A DNA stretch of 64,000 bases from Basidiobolus meristosporus CBS 931.73 (Eukaryota > Fungi > Basidiobolomycota), in assembly GCA_002104905.1 (NCBI GenBank), contig MCFE01000250.1, forward strand, positions 1-64,000, written 5' to 3'. A program made the position numbers and the translations under genes. Below, one piece after another: positions 5,105 through 58,424 of this stretch (position 1 is its first letter; every line of letters starts with the position of its first letter). Under the pieces are notes generated by a model. It had not been told where the DNA came from. It ran no database searches and was given only the letters and a program-made list of their open reading frames with translations.

Positions 5105-8100
5105 TGTTGATATTTTGGACTATTTGGTATCATTCTGCAGCTAAAAATTTACTTAACAATTTTGGCCTAGTCTTGGTCACTGTAGGACTAATTTACAGCT
5201 CTAACTTTGCCACTTTCTGCAGATCTATGATCTTATGATTATTCCCCATAGTCAGGATCAAGATAACATTATTACTAAGCATTATGTACTAACCCTGAAA
5301 CTGTTACAGAATGCTCCTGAATATTGAGAAACCCTCCTTAGTTAGTGATACAGCTGTATTACTTCTACAATGGTATAAATACTGAGCTTCTTTATTAATA
5401 AACAACAGTTCAACTATTATCACTATTGCTTGATAGGTTCCTTATATCCAAATCACTTCTTAAATTGCAACAGGTTTTGAGCCCCAATTGCCTTAATCTA
5501 TTCTAAAGATGACTTCTACCAGCAAAAAGAAACGCAAACATCTTCCCTGTAAAGGAGTAGTTTGATGGAAAGAACTACAGACTCTGGAAAATCAAGATGC
5601 AGCTCCACCTTGAGGAAAGGAAGCTTTGGAGTCTGGTAACAGGAAAATAAGTTGAACCCAAAGGAACAGTAGAAGAAGTGGAGAAGTTTCAAGAGAAGGA
5701 GAGAAAGGTCTTTAATGCCATATGTATCAATGTGGAAGATTCCTTCAATGAACTAATCTGTGCCACAAATACTGCCAATGCAGCATGGGAATCCTTAGAG
5801 AAGATCTTTAAAACAAAGTGAGTATCAAGCAAGCTTTATTAAAACAAAAGTTTTTCAACATGAGGAAAAAGCCAGATGATGGCATGCAACAACTCATTGC
5901 CAGAATGGAGACACTAGCAGAAGAACTTTACAGTATTAATACTTGTGTAGATGATGAAGAAAAGATACTTTGTCTGCTTTGCAGCCTACCAGAAGAGTAT
6001 GAGACACTCAGAAGACAATTTGACTTTAGACTATGTCAAAGGAAGACTTCTCCATAAAGAACTCAGACTTAATAATCAAGCAGAGAAAATTGAAGATAAT
6101 GCTCTGTTCAGTTCAGAAAGGCACACAGAATAGAAGGGAAGGCAACAAAACCAAAGAAAACTTGGTTGCCACTACTATTGTAAAATGCCACAACACTGGG
6201 CAAGCAAATGCAAGAAGAAACAAGCAGACAAAAAACAGAAACTAGAGCAGGCAAACCATATAACTACTGATGAACAGTTACTTGTAACCGTTAAGGAGAG
6301 TGCAAGTAACCAAAGTAATGAATGGTATATGGACGCTGGAGCCTCACAGCATATTTGTGGTATTAAGGAGTGGTTCAACAACTTCAAGACTATTCCCTCA
6401 AGAAAGGTTTATCTGGGAGATAACTCTGCTCTGGAAGTTACTGCAAGTGGGTCTATACAACTAAATATGATCAATAACTCAGGGCAACAACAGCAAGACT
6501 CACTGACATACTCCATGTACCTGGAGTAGCTAAGAACTTGCTCTCAGTCAGTGAGGCAACTGCTTAGGTACTGAAACTTGTTGTTACTAAGATGAGCTGC
6601 TCAATATTGAGTGAGAATTAACAAAAATTAGCTTTGGGAATCAAAGATCACAATATGAACAAGCTACAATGCAAGATTGTTGAACTTGAGTATGTCAACA
6701 TTTCTGAAACTGATGCAACTAGCTGGGTGACATGGCATAGGAGGCTAGAAAACATTGGAGAACAGAAAATGAGCCAATTGGTGCAGAATCAGCTTGTTTT
6801 AGGCCTAAAATACTCAGTTCCAGTCAAACTGGATATTTGTAAGGGATGTTCATATGGCAAACAAGCTAGGAAACATTTTAAGAGCTCAGAATGCATCAGT
6901 ACCACCAAAATATTGGCTATTGTACACTCAGACCTATGTGTCCACATGAGAACACTGTCCATTGTAGCTTAGAGATACTTTATGATGTTTTTTGATGACA
7001 AAACATGATATACATGGGTGTACTTTCTCAAAACAAAGGATGAAGCTTTAGAAACATTTAAGCACTTCAAGAACATGGCAGAAACACAAGCTGGGTGTAA
7101 ACTGAAGGTGCTACAAAGTTACAATGGAGGAGAATACTGTTCAGAGGAATTTGTAAAATGCTGCTTGTCTACTGGTACACTTCAGCTGACCACAATCCCT
7201 CATACTTTACAGCAAAATGGAGTAGCAGAATGTACAAATGGAACAATAGTAGAACTGGGAAGATCTATGCTACATAATAAGGGAATGGACTACAAGTTTT
7301 GGGCTGAATCTTCAACTACTGCAGCTTACATCAAGAACTGATGTCAGAAAACAGATCTGCATGATTCTACACCCCTTGAAGCATATACAGGCAAACACTA
7401 GATCTCCAGCACCTTGAGATCATTGGCAGTGCTGTTTTATAGCATCCCTGACACAAAACACTTAAAGTTGGAACCAAAGTGTAGGAAACAGATCTTTCTT
7501 GGGTATTGTGATGATACTAAAGGGCATAGAGTTTATGATGGCAACATTCAGGAGCTGATCAAGATATCATTGGCCAGCTGCCTGATGATGCAATCAGCAC
7601 TAATGTAGAAAATATGTATCAAATCCAGCCAGATACAGAAAATATTACTACCAGGTCCAGATCAGAACAGATTATCCCAGTTAGGAGATCTACCAGAATA
7701 AGAAATGCCAATGGATCCCAGAGGCAGACATCCAATGATCATGAAGAAGCTTATCTTGCCTTATGTGCCAAACCTCAGAATCTGGAACAGGCAATGCAAA
7801 GTTCAGATGCTACTATGTGGCAACAAGCAATGCAGGGGGAGTACCAATCACTGATCAATGCAAAAATGTGGGTACTGGTAGATTTACCAAATTGGAGAAA
7901 GCCAATAGGATGTAGATGGGTCTACAAGATTGAGATAACCTCCAATGGTGCTGTTGATATGTACAAGGCTAGATTAGTGGCTAAAGGCTACTTCCAAATC
8001 CAGGGACTAGACTTTAAGGAAATATTTGCTCTGGTTGCCAGGTTTAACTCCATAAGGACAGTTCTAGCCCTGGCAGCTGCACAAAGTCTAGATCTACACT

Positions 8101-34899: not shown

Positions 34900-35139
34900 C
34901 AAGCTATCCAGGTTGACCAACATCAAGAATTTTAAGTTAAACAGATTCTAGACTCCAAGTATATCCGGTCAAAGCTGTACTACTTAGTAGACTGGATTGG
35001 TTATGGCCCAAGTGACCAAACATGGGAACCAGCTACACATCTCACTAATTGTCAAGAACTAGTTACCCAGTTCCACCAACAATATCCTGCAAAACCTGCC
35101 CCAAAGGGAAACAGAGCTTTGCCTGGAAGAGTAGAATAG
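34900..35139 (+). repeat. Extra copy of the chromovirus 3' end (chromodomain + PPT) upstream of the 5' LTR
   Basis: 34900-35668 is a 769-bp direct repeat of 40287-41055 (offset 5387); 4 mismatches counted in the 240-bp non-LTR part. Confidence 0.93.
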
Positions 35140-35670
35140 TGTCATGATCACATGGCAACCATGAACACCCATGCCAAGTTTCAGCTTCCTAGCACAATTT
35201 CTAAGAGATTCCTTCTGGAACCTTCTACCACCTTCCAGAAAGTTCCTGACCATTCCAAACCATTGTTACCCAATGGAACATTCCATGGAAGCTTTCCATT
35301 GTATTTTTCATAGCCCAGTAGCATAAATGGAAATACCAGGTCACATGACTTAGTCACATGATCAGGTGACCCAATCCATTTCCCCATCCTGTCTCAGTGC
35401 TGTGTCATCTATGTCATTATCTCCAGCACCATTGCTGTGCCTCACCCCACAATCCCATTAGTATTAGCTAATATCTCTCAGCATCAGTATAGCCAAAAAG
35501 TATATATAGTCCTATCCCCCCTTAAGTATTCCTCAGTCTGATAAGCACAGGTCTTGAATAAACAGCCTTGCCTTGAATATCCACCTTGCCTTGTTGATCC
35601 ACACCTAAGTCCTTTCCTGGTCCTGCCTTGCCTAGCTCTACTCTCCTGCCTTGTGTCTATTCATAATAGT

Positions 35671-35681
35671 CTTATCAGACT
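35671..35681 (+). promoter_or_regulatory. Self-priming primer-binding site (Tf1-type)
   Basis: CTTATCAGACT, 2 nt after the LTR, is the exact reverse complement of AGTCTGATAAG (35535-35545), which starts 27 nt after TATATATA (35501-35508); no TGG tRNA-type PBS. Confidence 0.85.
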
Positions 35682-36979
35682 CTCCTGACTTACCTGTGGA
35701 TCCCTGCCTTCTGCCCAAAGCTTGAAGAAAACTTGTAAAAGGAATACTCACCGTAAGTATCACCCATCATCTTTCCCTAGTCTTGTCCTATAGAGGCCAA
35801 GATACTTTATCTTTGTAAAACTATTGGTCAAAGCTGCATTCACTTTATTACCCTGCTGGTGGAGTTCACAGTTGTTACAGTATTGGAAGCTTTAGTACAA
35901 TACTCTATCAAAGGATGCTGAAACCAGTACCTTCTGAAGTGACGCTAACTTATTTAAGTTGGGGATTGTGGCTCAATAGTTGTATTCTTGACATACTAGT
36001 GGCTTTACAAACCCACAACCTATTTTAGTATATTCCAGTATTCCTTGCAAGTTCATCCACCTTCCTCTGCTACCATGTCCCACCTAGAGCTGAACTTTGC
36101 CCAGCTCATGGCTGCCTTTACCCAACTGCAGCAAGAACATGCAGACCTCAGAAACACTCTTGCTCAGTTCCAGAACCAAAGTGTCCAGCAAACTAGCCAT
36201 GTCCCAGTCTACCAAGAACCCAAGTATACTCCTGCTACCAAGTTCAATGGCTCTCAGAATGAATTCCGCGGCTTCATCAACATGGTGAAGAACAATCTTG
36301 CACTCCAGCCCAACCAGTACCCCACTGACCAGGCCAAAGTTGGTTTCATCTCCAACCTGCTTACTGGTACAGCTCTCAAGTGGTTCTCCCCATTAGTGGA
36401 GACCAACTCTCCCCTCCTCAGAGACTACCAAGCTTTCCTCACTGAAATGGAGCTAACATTTGGTAACCTTGACCAAGCCAGAACTGCTGCCAACAAGATC
36501 AAGACCCTCAAACAAGGGAACAAACCAGCATCAGTCTATGCCTCAGAATTCTGACAACTCTCCAGTGACCTCAGCTCCTGGGGTCAAGCAGCCTTGATTA
36601 GCCAATTCTAAGATGGCCTCAATGATGAAGTTTGTGATCTGCTACTCACACTCCCAGATCCAGATACATTGGTTGAAGCTATGTACCAAGTAATCCGGTG
36701 TGATAACAGACTATTCCAGAAGAAGCAAAAGAACCGTCAAAGACACATTCCTGTTGCAGTCCCAGCCCCTCCTGCTCCCCAAGTCACTCCAGAAGATCCT
36801 ATGCAGATTGATAGTGCCAAATATAAGAAACTATCAAAGAGTGAAAAGTCCAGACGTCAACAAGCCAACCTCTGTCTATACTGTGGCCAACCAGGTCACG
36901 TTGCCAAGTCCTGCCCCAACAAGAAGTCCAGCTTCAAGCTGATGCAGTCCTCCAGCAACCAACCTGACTCAGATCTGTT

Positions 36980-37024
36980 GGGAAACTCCAATGTCCAGTT
37001 GCACTGACAGGCTTGCAACTGGAC
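36980..37024 (+). promoter_or_regulatory. -1 programmed ribosomal frameshift signal (gag-pol)
   Basis: In-frame G GGA AAC heptamer 36980-36986, 6-nt spacer, perfect 11-bp stem GTCCAGTTGCA/TGCAACTGGAC with a 10-nt loop; pol is in the -1 frame and open from the slip site. Confidence 0.9.
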
Positions 37025-40000
37025 CCACCCATGAAAATCCAGCATATCCAAGAATCTTCCTTTGCCACAAAATCTATCCAGTCCTTGAGAATGCCTGTCA
37101 AAATCCAGATCCCTGACTCCAGTCCTGTCCCAGCCCTAGCCCTGATTGATTCCGGTGCTTCATCCTGTTTCATTGACCAGGCCTTTGTCCAGAAGCACTC
37201 TATTCCTGTTACCTTTAAATCCTGTCCAGTCCAAGTAGAAGTTATTGAGGGAAGATCACTCTCCTCTGGTGCCATTACCCATGAAACATGCTTACTCCAG
37301 CTGTCCAGTACTGCCCACCAAGAAAGAATTGCGTTCAACATCATCAACTCACCACACTATCCTATTGTGCTTGGAAGCTCATGGTTGAGCTACCACAATC
37401 CAAGTATTGATTGGAAATCCAAGATCCTGTCATTCACCAGATCCCACCAAGTCAACTCCATGAAATCTCCAGACCCTGATAGCCGTGAAAAGACGGTTGC
37501 CAACAGTTCAACAGCCCAAGATACCTTGCCAGCTGAAGGAGCCCCCTCAGCAACTATATCAGCCAAGTACCAAGAGTTTGCCCATGTCTTTGACAAGAAG
37601 AAAGCAGAACTCCTCCCTGACCATTGGCCTTATGACTGCCCTATTGACCTTGAAGATGGAAAAGTCCCTCCATTTGGCCCAATATATAACCTCTCCCAGC
37701 CGGAGTTGAAAGAACTCCATGGTTATATTGAAGAAAACCTCCAGAAAGGTTTTATTCAGCACTCCAAATCACCTGCTGGAGCCCCAGTCCTCTTTGTCAA
37801 GAAGAAGGATGGCACACTCAGAATGTGTGTGGACTACCGTGCTTTGAATAAGATCACAGTCAAGAACCGTTACCCCCTCCCCCTGATTAACACACTGTTG
37901 GATCAGCTATCTGCTGCCCAAGTCTTCACCAAGATAGACTTGAGAGGAGCTTACATTCTTGTCAGAATCAAGCCTGGTGATGAATGGAAAACCGCCTTTT
38001 GCACAAGATATGGTCACTTTGAGTACAAAGTAATGCCATTTGGCCTCACCAATGCCCCTGCTGTGTTTCAACACCTCATGAATGACATATTCCATGAATA
38101 CCTTGACCAGCTTGTGGTAATCTACCTTGATGATATTCTCATATACTCCAAGAGCCAAGATGAACATGATGAACATGTCAAGAAAGTATTGAGAAAACTA
38201 GACTCTGCCGGTCTCTATGCCAAGCTAGAGAAGTGTGAATTTCACCAGAGAGTAGTGGAATTTCTTGGTTACCTCATCAGCCCTGAGGGAACAAGAATGG
38301 ACCCAAAGAAAGTTGACTCAGTCCAATCCTGGAAAACTCCAAGCTCAGTCAAGGAAGTACAATCCTTCCTGGGATTTTCCAACTTCTATTGCAGGTTCAT
38401 AGCCAACTACTCCAAGATAGTCACCCCTCTGACAATGCTTACCCAGAAGAACACACCTTTTGCCTGGAATGAGGAGCAATCCAGCTCATTCAACCAACTC
38501 AAGAAATCTTTCCTGAAGGCCCCCCTGCTTGCCCACCCTGACCTTGAGAAGCAATTCATAGTGGAGACTGATGCTTCTGATTTTGCCCTTGGTGCCATAC
38601 TCTCCCAGTATGATGAGGACAATGTGTTGCACCCCATTGCATTCTACTCTCGGAAGTTTTCCCCTGCAGAGATCAACTATGATATCTATGATAAGGAGTT
38701 GCTTGCCATCATTGTAGCCTTTGAACAATGGAGACACTACCTGGACGGTGCAAAACACAAAATCAAAGTCTTCTGTGACCATAAGAACCTTGAGTACTTT
38801 GCAACTTCCAAAGTACTAAACCGGAGACAAGCCAGATGGTCACTCTTCCTGTCCAGCTTTGACTTTACTATCACCTATACACCTGGTGCAAAGCAAGGAA
38901 AGCCTGATGCCCTGTCCAGAAAAAAGGAATATGCCCTGGAAGAGGGAGATGATGCCTGTTGGCAAATGGAACACCCATTGCTGAGCAAGAAACATTTTGA
39001 GATTCTTGCCACCCAGTCCTCAAGTCTTGTCATCCCTTCATTCCTAGTATCAATATCAGAATCCCAAGCCTCTGATATGACTTCTGGCACCATCAAGAAA
39101 TATCTGGAATCCCCAGTTGGGCCCCCTCCCAAGTTCCCAAGCATCCAGAACCTGCATTTGGTAAACAACCTCATCTACCACAAGCAGCAGCTTTATGTCC
39201 CAGACCTTGCCACCCAGCTAGACATCATTAAGTCCTGGCATGATTCAATGGCTGCAGGCCACTGTGGTACTGCCAAAACCTTGAATGCTATCAAAAGAGA
39301 TTTCTGGTGGCCTAGAATGATAACTCTTATCAAAGAGTACATTCTGACTTGTGATATTTGCAACCGTGCAAAACCAGCCAGACACCAGCCCTATGGACTT
39401 CTTCAACCCCTGCCTATCCCAGAACACCAATGGAGATCTATATCTATGGACTTCATTACTGACCTCCCTGAGTCATGTGGCTTCAACGCTATACTTGTAG
39501 TGGCTGACCAGCTGACCAAGATGGCTCACTTTATCCCTTGCTGTAAGAACACTGATGCAAAAGAAACTGCTGCTTTAGTCCTGAGAATATTTTCCGCCTT
39601 CATGGTTTCCCCAGTGATTTTGTGTCAGATAGAGGCCCACAGTTTGTGTCCAAGTTTTGGAAACATTTCATGCAATACCTTGGTGTTCAAGTCAAGCTCT
39701 CTACTGCCTTCCACCCACAGTCTGATGGCCAGACTGAAAGAATCAACCAGATTCTAGAGCAATACCTCCAGTGCTATATCAATTACCAGCAAGACAATTG
39801 GGTTGATCTACTCCCTGTTGCTGAGTTTGCCTACAACAACTCAAGCCATAGTGCAACCGGTTTTACACCATTCTATGCAAACTATGGATTCCACCCTCAG
39901 TTTGATATCCAGATTCCAACAAACCCAATGAGCCCACATGCGGCTGAACATGCCCAAGCAATCCAGGACATCCAGAATACCCTCAAGGAAAAACTATCCT

Positions 40001-41055
40001 TAGCTCAGGAAAACTACAAGAAATTTGCCAATCTAAAATGGCATCCCAGCCCTGATCTTAATGAGGAGATTTTGTATGGCTGCTCAGAAGAAACATCAGC
40101 ACCAACCGCCCTTGTGACAAATTGGATTTCAAGAAACTTGGTCCTTTCAAGATCAAGAAGAAGCTTAGCCCTATAGTATATCAGCTACAGTTACCAGCAA
40201 GTATGAAAATCCATGATACTCTCCATGTGTCCCTCCTGGAGCCGTATTGTAGGAACACCTTGCCAAACCGGCAAGAAGCAAAGCCCCAAGCTATCCAGGT
40301 TGACCAACATCAAGAATTTTAAGTTAAACAGATTCTAGACTCCAAGTATATCCGGTCAAAGCTGTACTACTTAATAGACTGGATTGGTTATGGCCCAAGT
40401 GACCAAACATGGGAACCAGCTACACATCTCACTAATAGTCAAGAACTAGTTACCCAGTTCCACCAACAATATCCTGCTAAACCTGCCCCAAAGGGAAACA
40501 GAGCTTTGCCTGGAAGAGGAGAATAGTGTCATGATCACATGACAACCATGAACACCCATGCCAAGTTTCAGCTTCCTAGCACAATTTCTAAGAGATTCCT
40601 TCTGGAACCTTCTACCACCTTCCAGAAAGTTCCTGACCATTCCAAACCATTGTTACCCAATGGAACATTCCATGGAAGCTTTCCATTGTATTTTTCATAG
40701 CCCAGTAGCATAAATGGAAATACCAGGTCACATGACTTAGTCACATGATCAGGTGACCCAATCCATTTCCCCATCCTGTTGCAGTGCTGTGTCATCTATG
40801 TCATTATCCCCAGCACCATTGCTGTGCCTCACCACACAACCCCATTAGTATTAGCTAATATCTCTTGGCATCAGTATAGCCAAAAAGTATATATAGTCCT
40901 ATCCCCCCTTAAGTATTCCTCAGTCTGATAAACACAGGTCTTGAATAAACAGCCTTGCCTTGAATATCTGCCTTGCCTTGTTGATCCACACCTAAGTCCT
41001 TTCCTGGTCCTGCCTTGCCTAGCTCTACTCTCCTGCCTTGTGTCTATTCATAACA

Positions 41056-43260: not shown

Positions 43261-44059
43261 CACTACTAGATAAATATATTCTTGAAGAGTATGGTTAATA
43301 TATGGTCAAATACTTGCCACTATGTATTCATTGATTAACTCAGAGTAATACCTAGTCTACACTGAGGGAGTTGAGAAGCTTCATTATCTCTGATCCCTCC
43401 AAATATTACCGTGCATATAATCAACCTTTTAGGTTACACTAGACCTGAAGACAAAGTCCACACATGTGAGAAATGCCAATCCTATCAACACGCTGACAAA
43501 AGTGCTCGAAGTGCATAAATTAAATAAGTCAACAATGCACTGTACAGTATGAATAAAAAAATCAAGTGCGCTAAGTTAATCAAATCTATTCACAACTTCC
43601 ACCTCAAGATCCATATATATCACCAATTACGGTAATGGAATATCCAGGATATTCAGTAAACTTCACACTAAAGACTGGCAATGTGATTGGCAGGACTCAT
43701 CAATGAGCAACAATATTACTATATGTCTATCCATCCCAGCACAGACACCACCTTTTACCTATTAATTTCGAACTTGACATTGGAAGTCAGCTCATCTCAC
43801 TGTCATTGGACAAGTAGTCATGACTCAACGAGCCCTTAAGACTGCCAAGTCTACGAATTATTCTGCATTTCATCACCACGTCTTGCATTGCCGATGATGC
43901 CACACAGTCCACCTTTACAGCATATTGATCTCCTAATCTGAGACAATGTTTAACGCCAAGGAATAAATTCATGCAAAGTGCAGAGGTCGAGCAACCTGAA
44001 TAAAAGCCCAGCTTGTCACCCAGGTACGAGCATCAATCTTGCACTGCACCGCATTCATC

Positions 44060-47037
44060 ATGACCATCTCCAACTCGAATGGCTCCTCCTTTTATGGTGC
44101 TAGAAGCGCTAGGAGAGCTACCGTGAAAGAATGTAAGAAGTATTCATTTACTCTCGACTGATCCATCAGTACTGACCACATCACACCAGTCAGCAAATCA
44201 GAAATAGCCAACCGAATTCAGAATAGCAACCTCGTCCGTCTAGTGGACGCATATCGCTCATTTGGCCACAAATGCGCCAGCATCGATCCACTGAATATGT
44301 GGCATCAGAGGTATGCTCACCATCCATGTGTGATGAACCCCAGTAGCTAACATCATGAACTTGCAGCCGCGACGCGTCCTTGGACCCATCAACCTATGGA
44401 CTAGATGACCCTCAAGCCGAATACCAACTTGAAGGTAAGATCAGCCACTACTGATCACTGACTGCAATACTCACCAGTGCATTAGGAATCGTGAGTATGA
44501 AGGGTCTGTCAAAAGCAACGCTTGCTCAGATCATCGAGCATCTCGAGAATGTTTACTGTGGCCACATGGCATTTGAGTTTATGCACATCACCGTAAGCCC
44601 TCTTGCTATGTGATGATTCAGCTTGACACCCACTAATGTTGATGTGCAGGATGACTCTTTGCGCAGGTGGTTTGCTAGCCAAGCGGAGACATGTATCGAC
44701 ACCAACTTCTCCAAGGAGGAAAAGTATAAGTTTCTTGAGTTGATGGCCAGGTCGGAGACCTTCGATCATTACATGATGCGTGAGTGTGGCCATCAGAAAC
44801 AGTTCAGCCTGGAAGGCTCTGAGAGTGCGCTTGTTGCGCTCCAACAGGTCCTGGAGCACTCCAGTAAGGCAGGAGTGCTGGAGGTGGTGATGTGCCTGAC
44901 TCACCGTTGTCGTATGCAGATCATGATGGAATTACTGGGAGTTCCCAAGGACTCGCTGTTCCGTAAGTTCCAAGGGCTCTCCGAGTTTCCCGACGAAATT
45001 CCTTCCCACATCATTGGCGACCTGGTGTATAACGCACAGGCGTCCGTAGACCTAAACCTTGGCGGCAAGCACCCACTGCATGTATCCGTAGTCCCCAATC
45101 CCTGTCATCTGGAACTCGTGAATCCAGTTGCCCTTGGCAAAGTCAGAGCCAAGCAGGAGGATTATTTGTCACTGGAGACGGATGACTACAAGGTAGAGGA
45201 CATGGTGATGAGTGTTCAAATGCACGGTGATGGGGGCTTCACTGGCCAAGGGGTAGTCACCGAGACATTTGGCTTGACCAATCTCCCTCACTTCACCACC
45301 GGAGGCACCGTCCACATTGTGCTCAACAACCAAGTCAGTGTCACCACCGACTCGGCCAACGGGCGCTCTACCACCTATTCCTCTGACATTGGCAAGATGG
45401 TGGAAATACCGGCCATTCATGTGAATGGTGATCATCCAGAAATGGCCGCCATTGCCGCCAGAATCGCCGTCAACTACCGCAAAACCTTTGGGAAGGACAT
45501 CATCATCGACATGATCACGTATCGTCGCCACGGCCACCACGAGGCAGAGGACCCCTTCTGCGCACAGCCGCTGATGTACAAGGAGATCCAGGCTCATGAC
45601 AGTGTCATCGACTTGTACACGCAGCACTTGGTCAGCGAGAAGGCCATTGATTCAGTCGATGTCAAGAACAACATCAAGGCAAGCCACGATGCTCACATCG
45701 CGAGCTGCTACCGAAATGCACCAAAATACCAGGTGCAGCCATCTCATTTGCTAGGAAAATGGCGATCGATGGTCATCCCACTGGAGAGCACTTGCAAAAT
45801 GGACACCGGAGTGGACCCAAGCATTCTGCGTAGCATCGGGATCCGGGCAGTCACCGTTGCAAAGGACATCGTGCTGAACGAGAAAATGCAAAAGCTGAAC
45901 ATCGACACAAGAATGGAGCAGATGAAAGAAGGAAAGAAGATCGGGTATGCCTCAGCGGAGGCCATGGCGATCGGATCTCTCCTACTTGAGGGTCACCATG
46001 CTCGCATTTGTGGCCAGGATGTGGCCCGCGGCGTATTCATACCCAGACACGCCATGATAAACTGCCAGCAAACCAACACCAAGTACACCCCCCTGAACAA
46101 CCTATCCTCGACCCAAGGGAAGCTTGAACTGGTGGATAGCCCGCTTGGTGAGCTAGCAGTGATGAGCTACGAGTACGGCATGTCCTTGGAGACTCCAAAC
46201 CGGCTGAACATGTGGGAAGCTCAGCTCGGCGACTTCTTCAACTCAGCACAGGAGGTGATCGACAGCTTCATCTCTGGAGGGGAAGAGAAATGGCTGCGTC
46301 AGTCGGGCCTAGTACTGGTGCTTCCTCATGGGTACGAAGGTGCAGGCCCTGAGCACACCTCATGCCGTATCGAGCGCTTTCTCCAGCTGTCCAGCGATCG
46401 GTTCAATGTCACCGATCCAAATGTCAGCAATAATGTCAACTGGCATGTGGTGAATTGCTCGACTCCTGCCCAATACTTCCATGTGCTACGCCGCCAGATG
46501 AAGCGAAACTATCGCAAGCCGCTGATTGTTGTTGGCCCCAAAAGGCTCACGCGCATTCCCAAGGCAGTCTCGGATCTGGATGACTTCGCACCGGGAACCT
46601 CATTCCAGCCAGTGATTTCTGATATGGAAGCCAACAAGCTATCAGTTCGACGAGTGATCTTCGTCTCTGGTAAGCTGTACTATGAGCTGCTGGAGGAACG
46701 GGCCAAGAAAGAAATGGTGGATCAAGTGGCGCTAATCAGGGTGGAGGAATACTCCCCGTTCCCCAAGGAAGACTTGGAAGCGGAGATATCCAAGTATCCA
46801 TCAGCATCCGAATTTGTGTGGTGCCAAGAGGAGACACAAAACGGCGGAGCGTGGTACTTCATGGAATCGAGGCTCAATCAGCTACTACCCAGCCAACACA
46901 AGCTCAAATACGTTGGGAGAGCCACTTGTGCTGCCCCAGCCAACGGTATTTACGTGAAGCACCTTGCCGAGCAGAAGCAGATCTATGAAGAGGCATTAAC
47001 CCTCTCATCGGCACAACATAGTCTCTTACCTCACTAA
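44060..47037 (+). CDS. DHTKD1: Divergent 2-oxoadipate/2-oxoglutarate dehydrogenase E1 (DHTKD1-type), copy A; 5 exons, 918 aa
   Basis: Exons 44060-44132, 44190-44310, 44367-44434, 44486-44592, 44650-47037 join in frame via GT-AG introns. Motifs LVRLVDAYRSFGH, YCGHMAFEFMHI, HGDG..NNQ, LPHFTTGG, GDFFN, GAGPEH, SCRIERFLQL are closer to DHTKD1 than OGDH/KGD1. The track start at 44623 is intronic. Confidence 0.93.
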
Positions 47038-48311
47038 GCCTGATTAGTGATTGCATACGTTAGTATACATACATGCATTTATTTATTGATTGATTTATCA
47101 GATCAGGATATGCAGTGGAGTATTATCATGGTTAGAAACAGAATATTCATAATGTAAAAATCCACGTACAATACAAGTAAAAAGAAGCATCTCAATCCGA
47201 GAAAAGACGAGTGTAGTATGTATACGAAAGTGACAGTGCTGACGTATTTGTAGTTATCACCCAGAAAGTTATTGCTTGTGTATGTTACTAAACTTCTGCC
47301 ATTTGGCTAGCCTACATCGTCAATAGTAGGTAGCTGGTGGCTCGCTGGGTCGCTGGCGAGGATCCGTCAGACGTGGTGCTGGAACCGGATCAATTGGGTG
47401 CGCCTTGTTCACGCCCTATCTGGTATGATCGGCGGTGTTAATGTTCTTGGCCGAGGTCTGGGCATCACTGGCCGCAAAGGCAGGCCACCTCGCCATATCT
47501 GTTGTCGTCTTCGCTTATACTGACCGAAGGTCAACGACACGTATTTCCAAAGGGTTGGAAATGATAATTATTTGAATTGTGGTCAGATTTATTTGGAAAT
47601 ATTTCGAGAAGCCCAAACACAAACTCTTGAACGTAAGCTTATTGTTCGCACTGCGATCTCTGGAGAGAGAGCTCTTTTGTCCTAAAGTCTAACTTGCATA
47701 ATCAAGATTATGCATAGTTTGGGCAATATACAAGGTGATAGTGTAACACCGCCAATCAACAATGGCTTCCATAATCATAAGTATCTACAGCAGGAATTCG
47801 AAGCATTTTTTCGATGATTGAGGCTGTGCGCATTGATCTAATCGCCTCATGCTATTTGCCACTATTTTCTTCGAACGCATGAAAGTACATAATAGAAATT
47901 TAGATTGTACTATCCGTCAGCATTACTGGCCATTGATTCTTTTTGTTACTAACCATGTTGTTATCATTGGCGTTTTCGGTTACTAACTATGCTATTACCG
48001 CATTATACTTGTTTTTACTTGCCATGGTATTAACGCAGGACTCAGGGCTTGGCTTACCAACACAAATCATCCAGAATGGGCCTATAACTATTATGCAATA
48101 GCCAAGAGTGGTTTTTGTATCCGACCAACCAATTTGCCTTGTTTTTTCGAAATTTCTTTGTCCCCATTCAACGTGAGTGATCTGAATGATACCATTTATA
48201 TCCATTGACCTTCTCCCATACTATTTGTAATGTTAGCCAAGCGAAGATTACTTCCCGAACACTCGACTTATAAAAGGGCACTCCCCCCCCCCTCATCCCT
48301 TTAGGACAAAC

Positions 48312-48896
48312 ATGGATACGAATACAACTGATCATTTCGACGCACTCTCCCCCGAACTGACCATGGCAATCTTCAGCTATTTGCTAGACCACGATCTGTG
48401 CAGGTGCTCTGTGGTCTCGCGGAAATGGAGGGCAATCAGCAACAACGAATCCCTATGGCGTAGCCTTTGCAAGGAATCCTGGGAAGGGAAGAAAGGGTGG
48501 TCAGGCCTTGCCAATCTATCGGTCGACCAAGTCGCCTCTGCTCTCGTCACCAAAAACGCTTTGTCTGCCGCCAAACTGCCACTCAATGACCACGTGAGCT
48601 GGAAGCTCTGGCTTCAACTCTCACACAAGGATAGTCAGAGGACTTGTATAACTGTGGATGAAATGTGTGGTGATTGGATTCTTCACATTGGGATCAATCA
48701 GAAATGTGACCCAATTCCCACACGATTCGAATCCGACTTCTCATTTTCATCCGAGAACACCGGTGTGTTGAAATGGGAAATAGTGGGCAATGCAATCAAG
48801 CTGCCAGACTTCCCTCCTCTGCAGGTAGCAAGAACCGCCGATTGGGGCTGGAGGCTTTATTGTCCATATTTCGCATTTTACGAAGCAGAGGTATAG
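48312..48896 (+). CDS. F-box protein, copy A (194 aa, intronless)
   Basis: N-terminal LSPELTMAIFSYL..LCRCSVVSRKW..LW F-box; C-terminal FPPLQVARTADWGW; TATAAAA at 48269-48275. Confidence 0.9.
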   Translation: MDTNTTDHFDALSPELTMAIFSYLLDHDLCRCSVVSRKWRAISNNESLWRSLCKESWEGKKGWSGLANLSVDQVASALVTKNALSAAKLPLNDHVSWKLWLQLSHKDSQRTCITVDEMCGDWILHIGINQKCDPIPTRFESDFSFSSENTGVLKWEIVGNAIKLPDFPPLQVARTADWGWRLYCPYFAFYEAEV

Positions 48897-50728
48897 AGTT
48901 TTGTATTCTACATATGTATTCTATATACAAAGAGAATTGTACATAATAAAACAATTAGACTGAAAATACTATTTACGTTGGCGTAAAAACAGAAAGTAAA
49001 TAGATCCACTGATGTACCTTCTCTACCCAAACCACTTGAATGCAGAAACGATCCAGCGCTTATTGTCAAATAGTAATCCTGGCCATACGGAATGATAAAT
49101 CAGTACAAGGCAAAGGGAAGCATTAAAGTGATTTACAATAGGTGAAATGGATTCACAAATGTTTGGAAATATATGTGGGAGCATAATGGTTGACATCAAA
49201 CAAAGCCAAGCAGTAAATTGAGTTGGGCATATTTGATGGGACCATATTTATAGTTACCAAGAACAGATTTTTGGTGAGTTTCCAGGACGGTAGATCGCCT
49301 CGCCATTTGTTCCCAAGCGCAGGAGTGCTGAACAGTTGTCGAAATGAAACAGAGAGTTTCAAACAAATCGGCCAAATTTGGAGACATAATACTTTTATAG
49401 ACAAGAGAGAGTACTTTCAGACCAAACTGCACCATGGGATTGATTCGATCATACTGGTACAGTTGATGTCGCTCATTTGATAGTTTTGCATGTTTCTTGA
49501 AAAAAGTGGATTCAGTTCATGATTGGTAACCTCAAGTAGCCTTCTTTTCTTCGCCTGGTGACCGGTGCGAACCACCTTTTACTGTTGAATACTATCAAGT
49601 GCGAATCAAACATTTCAGTACCTGCCAAAACCAGCAGCCGTACACGGAAATAAACTTCACTGCTTTGGTGACCCATGTCACCTCAATGATACCCATTTCG
49701 ACAATGGCTTCAAATTATACAGTCGAGTCATCCATGCCTAATATACATTTATGTCTGGTGAAATAGTGATAAATGCTTGTATGTATCCCCATGGATAGGA
49801 AACCATTGTTTTCATTTCAAAGTTGGGTCGCATTTGAGGGCTTGAGACGGAAGCATTTTAAGAAATACATAAAAAAATCCTCATTAGTGACTTAATATGG
49901 ATAAAGCAGCACCTGACTGAACTTGCAGAGTATATTTTATTGGGGATGCCAAAGAAATCTGGGTACGATATTTGGTGAATAAGATGTTGATTTATGTATA
50001 CGTGGTCATATACTGTCCCCCCCCCCGAGTGAGGGACGAGTATTCTATTCAATTGAACCCGTTTGGAATTGGTGATTCGATGTAGGTAAAATGTTGGAAA
50101 AACTACTTCTGGTATGGCCAAGGCAATCTGTGCCAATCTGGTGTGAGAAGAAAAGCATCACCATGGTAATGTATATTTCGATGATGGCGACATTGAAAAT
50201 AAACATAAAAAATTTGAAGATCGCTTTTCCATATAATAAATCTTTCATTTCTTAGTCTAATATCAAACGTTCCTTATCCATTCGTAGGCCCTAGTAGAAG
50301 ATCCAATAATATCATCAATTGTAGGAATACTACGCACTGATGTTTGAGCTGATCTCGCACTAAAGATCGATATTTTGATTTGTAGGGTTCATCAGATAGT
50401 AACCTGAATATATATATATTCAAGCTCTCAGCAGAACACAACTTAGAATTAACACTCCGCTTGGCTCACTGGCATAATTCAAGTGGCTGAAACTCTACCA
50501 ACCTATGTAAATGCCAAGTCTTCGATTTCTTCTGCATTTCATCACCACGTCTTGCATTGCCGATGATACCACACAGTCCGCCTTTCCAGCATATTGATCT
50601 CCTAATCTGAGACAATGTTTAACGCCAAGGAATAAATTCATGCAAAGTGCAGAGGTCGAGCAACCTGAATAAAAGCCCAGCTTGTCACCCAGGTACGAGC
50701 ATCAATCTTGCACTGCATCGCATTCATC

Positions 50729-53706
50729 ATGACCATCTCCAACTCGAATGGCTCCTCCTTTTATGGTGCTAGAAGCGCTAGGAGAGCTACCGTGAAAGAA
50801 TGTAAGAAGTATTCATTTACTCTCGACTGATCCATCAGTACTGACCACATCACACCAGTCAGTAAATCAGAAATAGCCAACCGAATTCAGAATAGCAACC
50901 TCGTTCGTCTAGTGGACGCATATCGCTCATTTGGCCACAAATGCGCCAGCATCGATCCACTGAATATGTGGCATCAGAGGTATGCTCACCATCCATGTGT
51001 GATGAACCCCAGTAGCTAACATCATGAACTTGCAGCCACGACGCGTCCTTGGACCCATCAACCTATGGACTAGATGACCCTCAAGCCGAATACCAACTTG
51101 AAGGTAAGATCAGCCACTACTGATCACTGACTGCAATACTCACCAGTGCATTAGGAATTGTGAGTATGAAGGGTCTGTCAAAAGCAACGCTTGCTCAGAT
51201 CATCAAGCATCTCGAGAATGTTTACTGTGGCCACATGGCATTTGAGTTTATGCACATCACCGTAAGTCCTCTTGCTATGTGATGATTCAGCTTGACACCC
51301 ACTAATGCTGACGTGCAGGATGACTCTTTGCGCAGGTGGTTTGCTAGCCAAGCCGAGACATGTATCGACACCAACTTCTCCAAGGAGGAAAAGTACAAGT
51401 TTCTTGAGTTGATGGCCAGGTCGGAGACCTTCGATCATTACATGATGCGTGAGTGTGGCCATCAGAAACAGTTCAGCCTGGAAGGCTCTGAGAGTGCGCT
51501 TGTTGCGCTCCAACAGGTCCTGGAGCACTCCAGTAAGGCAGGAGTGCTGGAGGTGGTGATGTGCCTGACTCACCGTTGTCGTATGCAGATCATGATGGAA
51601 CTACTGGGGGTTCCCAAGGACTCGCTGTTCCGTAAGTTCCAAGGGCTCTCCGAGTTTCCCGACGAAATCCCTTCCCACATCATTGGCGACCTGGTGTATA
51701 ACGCACAGGCCTCCGTAGACCTAAACCTTGGCGGCAAGCACCCACTGCATGTATCCGTAGTCCCCAATCCCTGTCATCTGGAACTCGTGAATCCAGTTGC
51801 CCTTGGCAAAGTCAGAGCCAAGCAGGAGGATTATTTGTCACTGGAGACGGATGACTACAAGGTAGAGGACATGGTGATGAGTGTTCAAATGCACGGCGAT
51901 GGGGGCTTCACTGGCCAAGGGGTAGTCACCGAGACATTTGGCTTGACCAATCTCCCTCACTTCACCACCGGAGGCACCGTCCACATTGTGCTCAACAACC
52001 AAGTCAGTGTCACCACCGACTCGGCCAACGGGCGCTCTACCACCTATTCCTCTGACATTGGCAAGATGGTGGAAATACCGGCCATTCATGTGAATGGTGA
52101 TCATCCAGAAATGGCCGCCATTGCCGCCCGAATCGCCGTCAACTACCGCAAAACCTTTGGGAAGGACATCATCATCGACATGATCACGTATCGTCGCCAC
52201 GGCCACCACGAGGCAGAGGACCCCTTCTGCGCACAGCCGCTGATGTACAAGGAGATCAAGGCTCATGACAGTGTCATCGACTTGTACACGCAGCACTTGG
52301 TCAGCGAGAAGGCCATTGATTCAGTCGATGTCAAGAACAACATCAAGGCAAGCCACGATGTTCATATCGCGAGCTGCTACCGAAATGCACCAAAATACCA
52401 GGTGCAGCCATCTCATTTGCTAGGAAAATGGCGATCGATGGTCATCCCACTGGAGAGCACTTGCAAAATGGACACCGGAGTGGACCCAAGCATTCTGCGT
52501 AGCATCGGGATCCGGGCAGTCACCGTTGCAAAGGACATCGTGCTGAACGAGAAAATGCAAAAGCTGAACATCGACACAAGAATGGAGCAGATGAAAGAAG
52601 GAAAGAAGATCGGGTATGCCTCAGCGGAGGCCATGGCGATCGGATCTCTCCTACTTGAGGGTCACCATGCTCGCATTTGTGGCCAGGATGTGGCCCGCGG
52701 CGTATTCATACCCAGACACGCCATGATAAACTGCCAGCAAACCAACACCAAGTACACCCCCCTGAACAACCTATCCTCGACCCAAGGGAAGCTTGAACTG
52801 GTGGATAGCCCGCTTGGTGAGCTAGCAGTGATGAGCTACGAGTATGGCATGTCCTTGGAGACTCCAAACCGGCTGAACATGTGGGAAGCTCAGCTCGGCG
52901 ACTTCTTCAACTCAGCACAGGAGGTGATTGACAGCTTCATCTCTGGAGGGGAAGAGAAATGGCTGCGCCAGTCGGGCCTAGTACTGGTGCTTCCTCATGG
53001 GTACGAAGGTGCAGGCCCTGAGCACACCTCATGCCGTATCGAGCGCTTTCTCCAGCTGTCCAGCGATCGGTTCAATGTGACCGATCCAAATGTCAGCAAT
53101 AATGTCAACTGGCATGTGGTGAATTGCTCGACTCCTGCCCAATACTTCCATGTGCTACGCCGCCAGATGAAGCGAAACTATCGCAAGCCGCTGATTGTTG
53201 TTGGCCCTAAAAGGCTCACGCGCATTCTCAAGGCAGTCTCGGATCTGGATGACTTCGCACCGGGAACCTCATTCCAGCCGGTGATTTCTGATATGGAAGC
53301 CAACAGGCTATCAGTTCGACGAGTGATCTTCGTCTCTGGTAAGCTGTACTATGAGCTGCTAGAGGAACGGGCCAAGAAAGAAATGGTGGATCAAGTGGCG
53401 CTAATCAGGGTGGAGGAATACTCCCCGTTCCCCAAGGAAGACTTGGAAGCGGAGATATCCAAGTATCCATCAGCATCTGAATTTGTGTGGTGCCAAGAGG
53501 AGACACAAAACGGCGGAGCGTGGTACTTCATGGAATCGAGGCTCAATCAGCTACTACCCAGCCAACACAAGCTCAAATACGTTGGGAGATCCACTTGTGC
53601 TGCCCCAGCCAACGGCATTTACGTGAAGCACCTTACCGAGCAGAAGCAGATCTATGAAGAGGCATTAACCCTCTCATCAGCACAACATAGTCTCTTACCT
53701 CACTAA
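50729..53706 (+). CDS. DHTKD1: Divergent DHTKD1-type E1, copy B; same exon structure
   Basis: Offset +6669 from copy A; 30 coding differences counted in 2757 nt; all splice sites intact. Confidence 0.93.
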
Positions 53707-54711
53707 GCCTGATTAGTGATTGCATACGTTAGTATACATACATGCATTTATTTATTGATTGATTTATCAGATCAGGATATGCAGTGGAGTATTATCATGG
53801 TTAGAAACAGAATATTCATAATGTAAAAATCCACGTACAATACAAGTAAAAAGTAGCATCCAACCCGAGAAAAGACGAGTATAGTATGTATACGAAAGTG
53901 ACAGTGCTGACGCATTGGTAATGATTACTCAAAAACTTGGTGATTTTTTAAACGCCTGTGACTGGTGATAATAACAGTCAGGTTCAAATAGGACAATGAT
54001 AGGAATATTAGCACTCAGCAATACAGTACCAAAATATAACATTTCTACTTATAAGTCCGCAGCACAGACATAACGCAAGGAAGCCAAACAAACTCAGCAC
54101 TCAGCCAATATACAACCAACTTGAGTGAGCGTTATTATACAGAGGCCTCGGCTAAATTTTCTAGTGTATAATGCGTAATCCTGGCAATCATTAATTAAGG
54201 CTTTATTGTGGTTTTTCGTTCCAAAGCGGATTCCGCCACGTTAATATCGTGCAAAATTAGTTCAGTCCACTGGTTGCCAGCATATTCTACCACTTCCAAC
54301 GCCTCAATGATGTACAGTCATGTTTGAGAATGTGCAATACCGATCCAATCCCCTGATGCTATCTGCTACTATTTTGATCAAAGAGCCAATCTGTACTGTT
54401 CGTCGGCATTAGTGGCCACGTTTTTACCATTAACCCGCTCCGCTACTTGACGTGTTATACCAGGCCTGCCAACGAGTACCATCAATACCCATTATGCAAT
54501 AGCCGAGAGTGGTTTTTGTATCCGACCAACCAATTTGCCTTGTTTTTTCGAAATTTCTTTGTCCCCATTCAACGTGAGTGATCTGAATGATACCATTTAT
54601 ATCCATTGACCTTCTCCCATACTATTTGTAATGTTAGCCAAGCGAAGATTACTTCCCGAACACTCGACTTATAAAAGGGCACTCCCCCCCCCTCATCCCT
54701 TTAGGACAAAC

Positions 54712-55298
54712 ATGGATACGAATACAACTGATCATTTCGACGCACTCTCCCCCGAACTGACCATATGGCAATCTTCAGCTATTTGCTAGACCACGATCTA
54801 TGCAGGTGCTCTGTGGTCTCGCGGAAATGGAGGACAATCAGCAACAACGAATCCCTATGGCGTAGCCTTTGCAAGGAATCCTGGGAAGGGAAGAAAGGGT
54901 GGTCAGGCCTTGCCAATCTATCGGTCGACCAAGTCGCCTCTGCTCTCGTCACCAAAAACGCTTTGTCTGCCGCCAAACTGCCACTCAATGACCACGTGAG
55001 CTGGAAGCTCTGGCTTCAACTCTCACACAAGGATAGTCAGAGGACTTGTATAACTGTGGATGAAATGTGTGGTGATTGGATTCTTCACATCGGGATCAAT
55101 CAGAAATGTGACCCAATTCCCACACGATTCGAATCCGACTTCTCATTTTCATCCGAGAACACCGGTGTGTTGAAATGGGAAATGGTGGGCAATGCAATCA
55201 AGCTGCCAGACTTCCCTCCTCTGCAGGTAGCAAGAACCGCCGATTGGGGCTGGAGGCTTTATTGTCCATATTTCGCATTTTATAAAGCAGAGGCATAG
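54712..55298 (+). pseudogene. F-box protein copy B with a 2-bp insertion (pseudogene or N-truncated 177-aa product)
   Basis: CCATGG in copy A is CCATATGG here. Reading from ATG 54712 stops after 25 codons; ATG 54765 gives a product lacking the LSPEL half of the F-box. Confidence 0.8.
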
Positions 55299-56750
55299 AG
55301 TTTTCTGCACATATGTGTTACCTTTATAGAGACTGTATATAGTAAAGCATTTGAGTCAATGAGACAACCTACAGTTTTTTTATAGAAATTAGGATCAGAA
55401 TACACTGTGGAAAGGCATGTTGAGCTATTTTACAAATAAACAACTAAGCGCCAAGCAAGTGTGTTCAATGATCGCATACTTTGTGGCCTGCTTGAAAATT
55501 TATCTCGGCTGGTAATTTGTTTTATGATTTGTTAAATCTCCCTGGTTTGAGGATCTGAACATTGAATTGATGCAAGCCTTGAAAATATCGAATACACCCA
55601 TCACTCTGTATGTTTCTTTTCACAACCTACCACAAAATATGTTGTGTATTATTTCTACCCCAAGCAGAACTCTCGGATAGACACCATCAGAATACCATAT
55701 GAAATTCTGCAGAAATTGTAAATTCCTCAAAGATGAGGATTATGGACTGTATTCAAGCATAACACCACATGCCAAGTATGAAGCCAAGCTATGAGCAATA
55801 CAAAAGTTATGAGTGTATTTGGGGTGGAAGACCATCGTAAGACCGTATTGAAAAGGAATGAATGCGGTCCAGAAATCCAGCTTTGAAATTTCCGATGGGC
55901 TACTGGGCGAGTTCACGCTACCTTTTATGCAATAAATCAACAAGGGAAAAATATAGTTCCTCCTAGTTTTCATCAAACCACTACCTAACTTCCAAAAATA
56001 CTCCTTCAGATCAAGATTTTAAACTTGGAATTCACAGTCCTGAAGTCAGGCAACTGATTGCATTGAACTTCTCTTCACAATCTTTGGATTACTGGTTACA
56101 AATTTTCATAGGAGCATTGTAGTAGCAAACATTGAGCCAACTTAGAATTGAACCAGGGGTCATCTGATCTCTAAGCAAACAGTACCAGCTACCGTGCCCT
56201 CTGTGCCTATACAACCTGGAAAACTCTCCCAGACTTGGAATTCAGCGTTGGGATTATACATTCCTTTTGGCAATCATTCTTCCAATCCCCGCACCCAAAC
56301 ATTTACAGATGCACTTCGCATTGACCCACGGTTACCCAATCACTTGAAAGATAGAAGATGACCCACTTTCAGCAATTCACCCAAATTTGGATGGTATTCT
56401 GAAGCCATCTGGCGAATAGTAGCGATCGAACGGCACTGAGTGTCAATCACCCTACACATCATGCAGGTACATTGACGAGCTTATGGAACATAGAGAAAGT
56501 GATTTCGTTGAAAGTGCACCGAAATTCTGCAAAAGGTGGACCTGACTGGCATTGAAGACCGTGACTATCCAAGTGGTTGGAAGGGAAATCAGGATAGATG
56601 CCTAATTGGGCTCGATTCATCTACTCGGATCTTTCATGGTTGACCGAGTATGACTGCACAAGGGATGTGGATATATTTCACGTGTGATTTGGCTAATACA
56701 TGTTGTCGGACCAGGTCAAGTTGTCCTGGGCGTACGACGAATTATCAGGA

Positions 56751-58424
56751 TTACAAATACGCAGCTTGAGGATGGCTCTGTTGAATCTGGGACCTGAGGA
56801 TGCGTCTAAGGATTTTACCATGGGTGTTCCGAGGGATATGATCCACAAAAATCACCCCCGCCCGAAGCCTCTTGAAGTCAGTCACTCTGTCCGCCACCTG
56901 GTCCACGATCTGCTCCGCAAGCCCCTCCGAAGCAAGGTGAGGATCGCTCAACACCACGCACCCACAAGGCAAATCGGTCTGCTCCCTCTCAGAGGAGAAA
57001 CCGATCACCGCCGCCTCGGATACCGCTGGATGAAGGAGAAGATGCCCCTCAAGCTCGGCCGGAATCACCACGTTGTTTTTGTACTTGATCACCTCCTTGA
57101 TGCGGTCGACGATGTGCAACGAGTTGCTCTCGTCTACGTAGCCAATATCTCCCGAATGAAAGAACCCAGAGGAGTCAAAGGCGTCCTGAGCCCCGACGGG
57201 GCTTTTGAAGTAGCCTTTCATCATGCTTGGCCCCCGCGCGCAGATCTCACCCCTCTGACCAGAGCCCAAGGCTTGGCCATCCTCGTCCACGATTTTGATC
57301 TCGTAGTTAGGCATCAGGTATCCGGTGGATTCCTCGGCAGCCGCCGAGGGAGTGGTGAAAACTATCCCCCCGCAGCATTCGGTCATGCCGTACAGGGACC
57401 CGATGACCATGTTGTACTTCTCTTGCACCAAGTCACACACCTTACGTGACAATGGACTACCGAAGTAGAAGCCCCGCTTCATGCAGCTGAGGTCATACTT
57501 GGCCACCAATGGGCTTTTCGAGAGTAGACTGATGACGTACGGGGCGACGGTGATGTTCGCAATCCGGTATTTCTCCACCGCCTCCAGGAAAAGTTCGAAG
57601 GAGTACCTTTGCGGCAAAAGAATGAAGAGGCTACCTCCCAGGAGAGTGGAAAGCACCATGGAAAACCCTGAGATGTAGCACATGGGAGAGGTGTTCAAGG
57701 CCGTCCCCCTGAGAGTGTCGCTGTATTTTCTGGCCATCGCACCGAATTGTGTCAAGTGAGCGACGATATTTCGGTGGGTCAACAGGATGCCCTTGGGTGT
57801 AGCAGTGGTCCCGGATGAGTACATCAACAGGGCGGGACTATCCGCGTACTCCTCGGGGTCCAAGGTCCAATCAAGCACCCCGGAGCTGTACGCCAGCGCA
57901 GTCCAGACGTAGTCCGGGGAATCCTCGCTGTCCAACACGAAAATCCGTGTGTCCTGGAGATTGGCCAGCCTGGCCGCCTCCTTGACCGTTTCGAATACTG
58001 CCACGCTGGAAATGATGATCCCAGGCATGGAATCAGAGAGTTGGGAAGCCATCTCCTGTGCTTTGTATTCCGCGTTAACTGGCATACATGTCCCACCTAG
58101 AGAAGGCCGTTAGAATGCAGAAGAGACAACGGCAGAAGTTCTTCCAAACATACCGGTTGCAATAGTACCAAATACCACTGAACTGTAATCCAGGTGGTTG
58201 TCGGACACCAGAGCCAGGAGACACCCCTTTCCAAAGCCATGACCTTCCCTCAGACCCTTGGCGATTCGCTTTGAGCCATCCTTCACTTGGGCCAAGCATC
58301 TAGTCTCTTGTGTGAGATGGTCCAAGAATATGGGAGCGGTCTCATCATAGCGGCCAGAAGTGGCGAATGTGTAAAGATCAAGGTTCGGGATATCCACACG
58401 CGGGTATGGTGAAGAGAAAATCAT
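56751..58424 (-). CDS. 4-coumarate-CoA-ligase/luciferase-like acyl-CoA synthetase (ANL family), 2 exons, 538 aa
   Basis: Exon 58424-58154, 57-nt intron, exon 58096-56751; motifs YSSGTTATPKG, YGMTE, GDIG, IVDRIKEVIKYK, GKILRR. Confidence 0.93.

Follow-up and report, generated by a model that had tools for sequence, protein, structure and literature searches.

To our knowledge, the only substrates established for eukaryotic E1 enzymes of the OGDH/DHTKD1 type are dicarboxylic, namely 2-oxoglutarate and 2-oxoadipate. Attempts to widen the substrate range of this class have relied on mutating a histidine that is naturally replaced in the proteins described here, and two histidines of the E. coli enzyme (E1o, SucA), His260 and His298, are reportedly the subject, as its title has it, of a study by Shim et al. 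from 2011. An E1o-type fold can also work without an E2 partner, as in mycobacterial KGD, a decarboxylase/2-hydroxy-3-oxoadipate synthase. Here we describe two tandem genes for a thiamine diphosphate (ThDP)-dependent E1 of this type in the first 64 kb of Basidiobolus meristosporus CBS 931.73 contig MCFE01000250.1 (the window, 64,000 nucleotides in full). They belong to a Basidiobolus family in which all five contacts assigned to the distal carboxylate of the substrate are exchanged and the catalytic residues are kept, and we favour the reading that these proteins are active ThDP enzymes with a changed substrate that is probably not a dicarboxylate.

Relationship to described E1 enzymes

Both genes belong to the OGDH/DHTKD1-type superfamily of homodimeric ThDP-dependent E1 enzymes. 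A single chain of ~900 amino acids carries the Pfam domains E1_dh, Transket_pyr and OxoGdeHyase_C, all above gathering cut-offs, and NCBIfam models for 2-oxoglutarate dehydrogenase E1 match above cut-off as well. The closest described system, by sequence (~45-53% identity) and by fold, is DHTKD1 or E1a, represented by the human structures 6SY1 and 6U3J and by P0007 of the same genome. Human DHTKD1 was the best solved relative (E = 1e-220 across 776 residues), the top matches outside the clade were fungal and animal DHTKD1 rather than OGDH, and an AlphaFold2 (AF2) model with a predicted local distance difference test score (pLDDT) of 72.8 matched 6U3J best, with template modelling (TM) scores of 0.79/0.83. 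The model is a monomer built from a 17-row alignment with no cofactor and was used for fold assignment alone.

An earlier note on this DNA, made from its letters alone, had described a duplicated DHTKD1 paralogue. The duplication is borne out, and its extent was understated, as the genes form a family with no fewer than five ancient paralogues, to which the recent tandem copies are added. Besides P0001, encoded in the window, B. meristosporus has paralogues on other contigs at 86% (P0002), 77% (P0003) and 74% (P0005) identity, and P0004 of Basidiobolus ranarum is the orthologue of P0005. Canonical DHTKD1, which the note proposed to look for elsewhere in the genome, is indeed there as P0007, with standard motifs.

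The clade shares with DHTKD1 the three-domain architecture, the lack of an OGDH-type N-terminal domain, the ThDP-Mg motif and, in human numbering, Glu640, His223, His435 and His708. Unlike DHTKD1, it has replaced the E1a signature Tyr190/Ser263/Tyr370 together with the ligands His264 and Ser288, carries a two-residue insertion before the GDLVYN motif, lacks a presequence and has changed 60 conserved columns. With OGDH/SucA E1o (E. coli 2JGD, M. smegmatis KGD) it has in common Phe at position 190, Tyr at 263 and the same catalytic residues; in contrast to these enzymes, however, it has Asn for E. coli His298, Cys for the Ser of NPSHLE and Val for Phe394, the Pfam domain 2-oxogl_dehyd_N (PF16078) was not detected in P0001, and identity is lower, at ~34-37%. 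Compared with the laboratory point variants of E. coli E1o at His260 and His298, the His298 equivalent is substituted naturally here, alongside ~60 co-fixed changes and with His260 intact.

Active-site residues

We compared the five full-length clade members with 113 canonical DHTKD1 sequences in an alignment numbered on human DHTKD1, whose constant offset was verified at nine anchor residues. All five distal-carboxylate contacts were swapped in every member: Y190F, S263Y, H264N, S288C and Y370V. In the canonical sequences, Tyr190 occurred 113 times, Ser263 111 times, Tyr370 110 times, and His264 and Ser288 112-113 times. The distal-carboxylate roles of Tyr190, His264 and Ser288 come from work on human DHTKD1 (PMC7340257, PMC8146983, PMC7835950), and the replacements at these contacts are mostly less polar. 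Positions 190 and 263 have gone back to the states found in OGDH (E. coli Phe227 and Tyr297), which would make the pocket similar to one sized for 2-oxoglutarate but without the carboxylate ligands.

R189Q is likewise present in five of five members. Further clade changes include Thr600Val, Ser602Ile and Gln603Pro/Ala within the invariant GRGTFSQRH motif, Phe665Leu, S639G next to the catalytic Glu, and His at the human disease position R455; Gly369Ser, Trp433His and Asn436His are found in the P0001-P0003 subclade only. All clade members also have a two-residue insertion in the active-site loop before GDLVYN (44980-45030, copy 1 residues ~234-250; EIPSHIIGD against canonical ESLPA--TGD), a loop that varies in length between DHTKD1 and OGDH too.

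Set against these replacements is an intact catalytic core. K188, H223, H289, L290, D333, N365/N366, H435, E640, H708 and R715 are kept in all five members; the ThDP-Mg motif (GDG...NN), the wedge Leu and the activating Glu are present in both window copies and every clade member, as are the catalytic histidines H208, H419 and H692 (human H223, H435 and H708) in every clade member. In the human enzyme, the HRGR histidine H223 pairs with the leaving carboxylate (PMC8146983), L290 is the wedge of the V conformation and E640 activates the cofactor (PMC7340257, PMC7835950), D333 and N366 are Mg ligands, and H435 and H708 handle the 2-oxo group and acyl transfer (PMC7340257, PMC7835950, PMC8146983, PMC9367764, bioRxiv 10.1101/2020.01.20.913012).

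The motif readings of the earlier note hold up. All the motifs it listed are present (KQFS, CLTHRCRMQ, GDLVYN, NPCHLE, HGDGGF, NNQVSVTT, GHHEAEDP, RGVFIPRH, LGE..SYEYG and WEAQLGDF), the Asn codon of GDLVYN lies at 45031-45033 and the Cys codon of NPCHLE at 45103-45105, as it had placed them, and the residue table and alignment agree with it that the ThDP/Mg frame and the catalytic His and Glu remain while the substrate pocket is rewritten. One residue number needs correction: the GDVKYH histidine, which it gave as E. coli SucA H260, is H298 in the translated E. coli K-12 sucA, and H260 is the HRGRLN histidine, retained in the Basidiobolus clade.

The substitutions are not ordinary variation of fungal DHTKD1, a possibility the note had itself raised, because they are missing from canonical DHTKD1: among the best 120 database matches, 0 of 113-114 canonical sequences from fungi and animals carried them, and the variant motifs were confined to six Basidiobolus proteins. 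Across the whole protein, 60 of the 324 columns that are ≥90% conserved in canonical DHTKD1 are altered in every clade member. Changes are concentrated between human residues 187 and 292, where 26 of 52 conserved columns (80% cut-off) are altered, compared with ~9% in the C-terminal half. This rewired stretch is the part least like P0007 (42% identity vs 55% elsewhere) and at the same time the part most conserved within the clade (82-94% vs 72-85% elsewhere). Such an apparent burst of change followed by constraint is the pattern expected of a functional shift, not of a loss of function.

Origin and selection

The five full-length proteins formed a monophyletic group with support 100; the stem of this clade measures 1.05 substitutions per site and its internal branches 0.08-0.29. 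In the free tree the clade came off at the fungal base, alongside the long animal (outgroup) branch, a position that may reflect long-branch attraction. A tree with the clade as sister to P0007 was marginally better (log-likelihood difference of +0.56) and was not rejected by the approximately unbiased (AU) test (p = 0.53); because the test accepts this placement, the simplest origin is that DHTKD1 was duplicated within the Basidiobolus lineage. Horizontal transfer or an ancient separate family is not favoured, the nearest relatives being fungal DHTKD1 and the AU test allowing the P0007 sister position. A search with the rewired stretch (residues 160-300) returned the six Basidiobolus proteins at 82-100% identity and next-best matches at ≤44%. 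Whole-length and region-limited word searches, which are blind to very distant relatives, found no member of the clade outside Basidiobolus.

Within the clade, selection on the protein has been strong. The two window copies differ at 30 coding positions, 22 synonymous and 8 non-synonymous (8 amino acids; binomial p = 2e-8 against neutrality), and their last exons gave a dS of 0.037 and an omega of 0.09. Synonymous sites are saturated between the paralogues, at dN of 0.08-0.21, and the orthologous pair P0005/P0004 gave a dS of ~2.8 and an omega of 0.03. The clade genes are old and under strong purifying selection, and are not decaying duplicates.

A third near-identical copy (96-97% identity) lies at MCFE01000601.1 1236-3551, again next to an F-box gene, and is annotated as P0006 (611 amino acids). 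It has no equivalent of window positions 45196-46079: the deletion, whose length of 884 bp is not divisible by 3, takes out the ThDP-binding core, and the copy is probably dead.

N terminus and location

In four of the five annotated clade proteins, a conserved YG motif is preceded by 11 residues, of which 0-1 are basic and at most two acidic; in the fifth, P0003, an internal Met occupies the position equivalent to the other starts. Canonical proteins have a median of 35 residues before this motif, rich in basic residues (P0007 has 56, 9 of them basic). The E1 gene in the window has no upstream in-frame extension, with a stop just 5' of the ATG, and no C-terminal tripeptide resembling a type 1 peroxisomal targeting signal was seen in the clade proteins. 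As judged from these termini, a classical mitochondrial presequence is missing from the clade, and the protein may be cytosolic.

Neighbourhoods of the paralogues

The neighbours of P0002 and P0003 are unrelated housekeeping genes. P0005 (MCFE01000310.1, 326-9636) lies with genes for a D-2-hydroxyacid dehydrogenase, a BNA3/kynurenine-aminotransferase-type transaminase and a microsomal-type cytochrome P450 divergent from the E1 gene. The order P450-E1-CAF1 is conserved in B. ranarum (297-5664), with the P450 92% identical, and the contig of B. ranarum stops short of the other two genes; the P450-E1 pair, shared by P0005 and B. ranarum P0004, is the only shared neighbourhood. The P0005 neighbourhood may be a small metabolic cluster, and we treat it as a possible lead towards 2-oxo acids derived from transaminases, not as evidence for them. 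Downstream of P0005, at MCFE01000310.1 14066-18397, are three tandem genes of the class-II fructose-bisphosphate-aldolase family (338-358 amino acids). A literature search found no paper treating Basidiobolus together with DHTKD1, and a paper on Basidiobolus secondary metabolism makes no mention of the E1 clade.

Interpretation

The account that fits these data best is, with somewhat better than even confidence, that of an active, decarboxylating ThDP enzyme whose substrate has changed from 2-oxoadipate or 2-oxoglutarate, probably to something other than a dicarboxylate. A duplicated fungal DHTKD1 would have given rise, in Basidiobolus only, to a subfamily of homodimeric ThDP-dependent 2-oxo acid dehydrogenase E1, with a burst of substitution after the duplication focused on the side of the active site that grips the substrate tail, and strong purifying selection since. 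Residues for ThDP-Mg binding, cofactor activation, holding of the 2-oxo group and C1 carboxylate, and protonation or transfer of the enamine are all still in place. The substrate would more likely be a 2-oxo acid of ~C5-C6 whose tail is uncharged or differently placed, candidates being straight-chain, branched, thioether, amide or aryl 2-oxo acids made by transaminases. The enamine could pass to a lipoyl-E2 or, if the protein sits outside the matrix, be released as an aldehyde or used in carboligation.

Among the roles that the earlier note had put forward, a changed substrate of this kind fits best, a non-catalytic regulator is disfavoured for reasons given below, and the lack of a presequence makes carboligation, or decarboxylation without a partner, possible. 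Human E1a has a carboligation side reaction with glyoxylate (PMC9367764); compared with that enzyme and with KGD, E2-free use in the Basidiobolus clade is suggested solely by the missing presequence. A more specific version, which we entertain tentatively as a speculative possibility, is that of a presequence-less E1 family working outside mitochondrial complexes and, on its own, decarboxylating or carboligating uncharged and possibly aryl or thioether 2-oxo acids that stem from transaminases, with the oldest locus (P0005/P0004) in a small specialised pathway.

Several observations weigh against a non-dicarboxylate substrate or a role outside the complexes. Lys188 is kept and position 436 is Asn or His, and Lys188 and Asn436 have been docked as distal-carboxylate partners in human E1a (PMC9367764; bioRxiv 10.1101/2020.01.20.913012). 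Tyr250 and Asn251 of the clade should be able to hydrogen-bond, and a dicarboxylate could possibly be bound in a new way. Both acyl-transfer histidines are conserved, as are Arg715, the peptides shielded by E2o in human E1a and, within the clade, the short N-terminal peptide; these features hint at a continuing partner, which is awkward for a protein that lacks a presequence. The gene neighbourhoods hint weakly at a pathway. Structure prediction, suggested in the earlier note as a check, delivered the fold match to 6U3J and left the pocket unreadable: AF2 confidence is low (pLDDT <50) precisely at the active-site loops, and because of this we draw no conclusion about pocket shape from the model. 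In human DHTKD1 the same loops become ordered only upon cofactor binding (PMC7340257).

Some of these points would suit a dicarboxylic isoenzyme acting on 2-oxoadipate, 2-oxoglutarate or a near analogue with mitochondrial E2o/E3, the carboxylate being held by Lys173, Asn251, Tyr250 and His420 (copy 1 numbering). Consistent with it, Lys188 is unchanged, P0004/P0005 keep Asn436 where P0001-P0003 have His, the Phe and Tyr of OGDH are back at positions 190 and 263, the acyl-transfer histidines and E2o-protected peptides are conserved, and the human Y190F variant is still active on 2-oxoadipate, with a ~5.7-fold loss (PMC8146983). We nevertheless consider an isoenzyme of this sort unlikely. All five crystallographically or model-assigned carboxylate contacts have changed together, the near-invariant His264 and Ser288 included; T600V, S602I and Q603P/A lower the polarity of another invariant motif; canonical DHTKD1 is already present in the genome; and there is no presequence.

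Less probable again is a pseudoenzyme, that is, a non-catalytic E1-like scaffold or regulator such as a competitor for E2 or another partner. The long stem and the rewritten surroundings of the active site, including S639G and, in three members, the diphosphate-loop change G369S, would be compatible with it, as would the His that takes the place of the human disease position R455 throughout the clade. A non-catalytic protein would, however, be expected to let essential residues drift, which makes this reading improbable, since none of the essential ThDP-Mg or catalytic residues has been lost in five members despite saturated synonymous sites, and no part of the protein is more constrained than the rewritten region. 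That the genes are decaying duplicates with motifs made odd by relaxed selection is effectively excluded: the locus does adjoin transposon-rich DNA and the third copy elsewhere has its 884-bp internal deletion, but both window copies have complete reading frames, conserved splice sites and an omega (~0.09) that rejects decay, and the motifs are fixed in the paralogues and in the B. ranarum orthologue (omega 0.03).

A strongly conserved natural family in which all five distal-carboxylate contacts have been exchanged offers a ready test of the determinants of specificity in the E1 fold. It could bring to light a decarboxylase, dehydrogenase or carboligase activity on 2-oxo acids that is new, possibly in the first member of the E1 class to act outside a mitochondrial complex. 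The family also illustrates clearly how gene duplication, here in an early-diverging fungus, can be followed first by a burst of change and then by constraint.

Gene models and tandem duplication

Two 804-codon open frames, 44623-47037 and 51292-53706, contain the last exons of two five-exon E1 genes (Table 1). The annotated protein P0001 is an exact match to the translation of copy 2, which validates the splice sites, and the extents of the E1 genes agree with the public annotation. The genes lie on the two arms of a tandem segmental duplication. A second repeat block with an F-box gene pairs 48084-48956 with 54485-55352; the annotated F-box proteins are unequal in length between the copies (194 vs 177 amino acids), and the spacer between the repeat units (48903-50511) has no counterpart 3' of the second unit. 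No functional link between the F-box gene and the E1 genes was shown; the F-box gene was carried along in the duplicated unit.

Table 1 Positions of the E1 genes, the duplicated segments and the active-site features in the window; E1 residues are numbered as in copy 1 unless marked human (DHTKD1) or E. coli (SucA)
Feature	Position	Strand	Basis
Copy 1, divergent DHTKD1-type E1 gene, 918 amino acids	44060-47037	+	Splice model, open 2757-nt coding sequence
Copy 1 exons	44060-44132, 44190-44310, 44367-44434, 44486-44592, 44650-47037	+	Splice model
K173-Q-F-S (human K188-R-Y190-G); Lys kept, Arg to Gln, Tyr190 to Phe	44797-44808	+	Residue table
His208 = human H223 = E. coli H260, kept	44902-44904	+	Residue table
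Tyr250-Asn251 in GDLVYN = human Ser263-His264 = E. coli Tyr297-His298	45028-45033	+	Residue table
Cys275-His276-Leu277 in NPCHLE = human Ser288-His289-Leu290; Ser to Cys, His and Leu kept	45103-45111	+	
ThDP-Mg motif: Asp317 and Asn349-Asn350 kept; loop 1 Ser353-Val354 = human Gly369-Tyr370	45229-45342	+	
Loop 2, H417-G-H419-H420 = human W433-G-H435-N436; acyl-transfer His kept, flanks changed	45529-45540	+	
V585-F-I587-P588 in place of the invariant T-F-S-Q of GRGTFSQRH	46033-46044	+	Conserved-column comparison
Glu624 = human Glu640, cofactor-activating, kept	46150-46152	+	
His692 = human His708, loop 3 catalytic histidine, kept	46354-46356	+	
Copy 2, E1 gene, 918 amino acids	50729-53706	+	Copy 1 model offset by +6669 nt
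Tandem segmental duplication, first arm	43843-47270	.	Self-BLAST, 98.5% identical to second arm
Tandem segmental duplication, second arm	50512-53938	.	Self-BLAST
F-box gene in the duplicated unit, two copies	48312-48896 and 54765-55298	+ (first copy)	Pfam F-box-like

Surroundings of the E1 genes in the window

Downstream of the duplicated units lies a gene for a 538-residue AMP-binding enzyme (56751-58424, minus strand), which among solved structures is closest to luciferases and 4-coumarate-CoA ligases; Htd2, CHCH and ThiF genes come after this acyl-CoA ligase gene of the 4-coumarate-CoA ligase/luciferase type. No pathway was indicated by these window neighbours (F-box, acyl-CoA ligase, Htd2, CHCH and ThiF), and no link from them to the E1 genes was shown.

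Upstream of the E1 genes, a Ty3/gypsy long terminal repeat (LTR) retrotransposon occupies 34900-41053, bounded by 767-bp LTRs (34900-35666 and 40287-41053) that are 98% identical. Its open reading frames comprise gag (36045-36554) and a 914-amino acid protease-reverse transcriptase-RNaseH-integrase (37013-39757), and the integrase core runs on in a different frame at 39622-40176, which suggests a frameshift. The remainder of the upstream part, window positions 1-34800, is AT-richer (GC 0.37-0.41) and contains many direct and inverted repeat pairs at 77-92% identity, which look like a pile of old, degenerate transposable elements.

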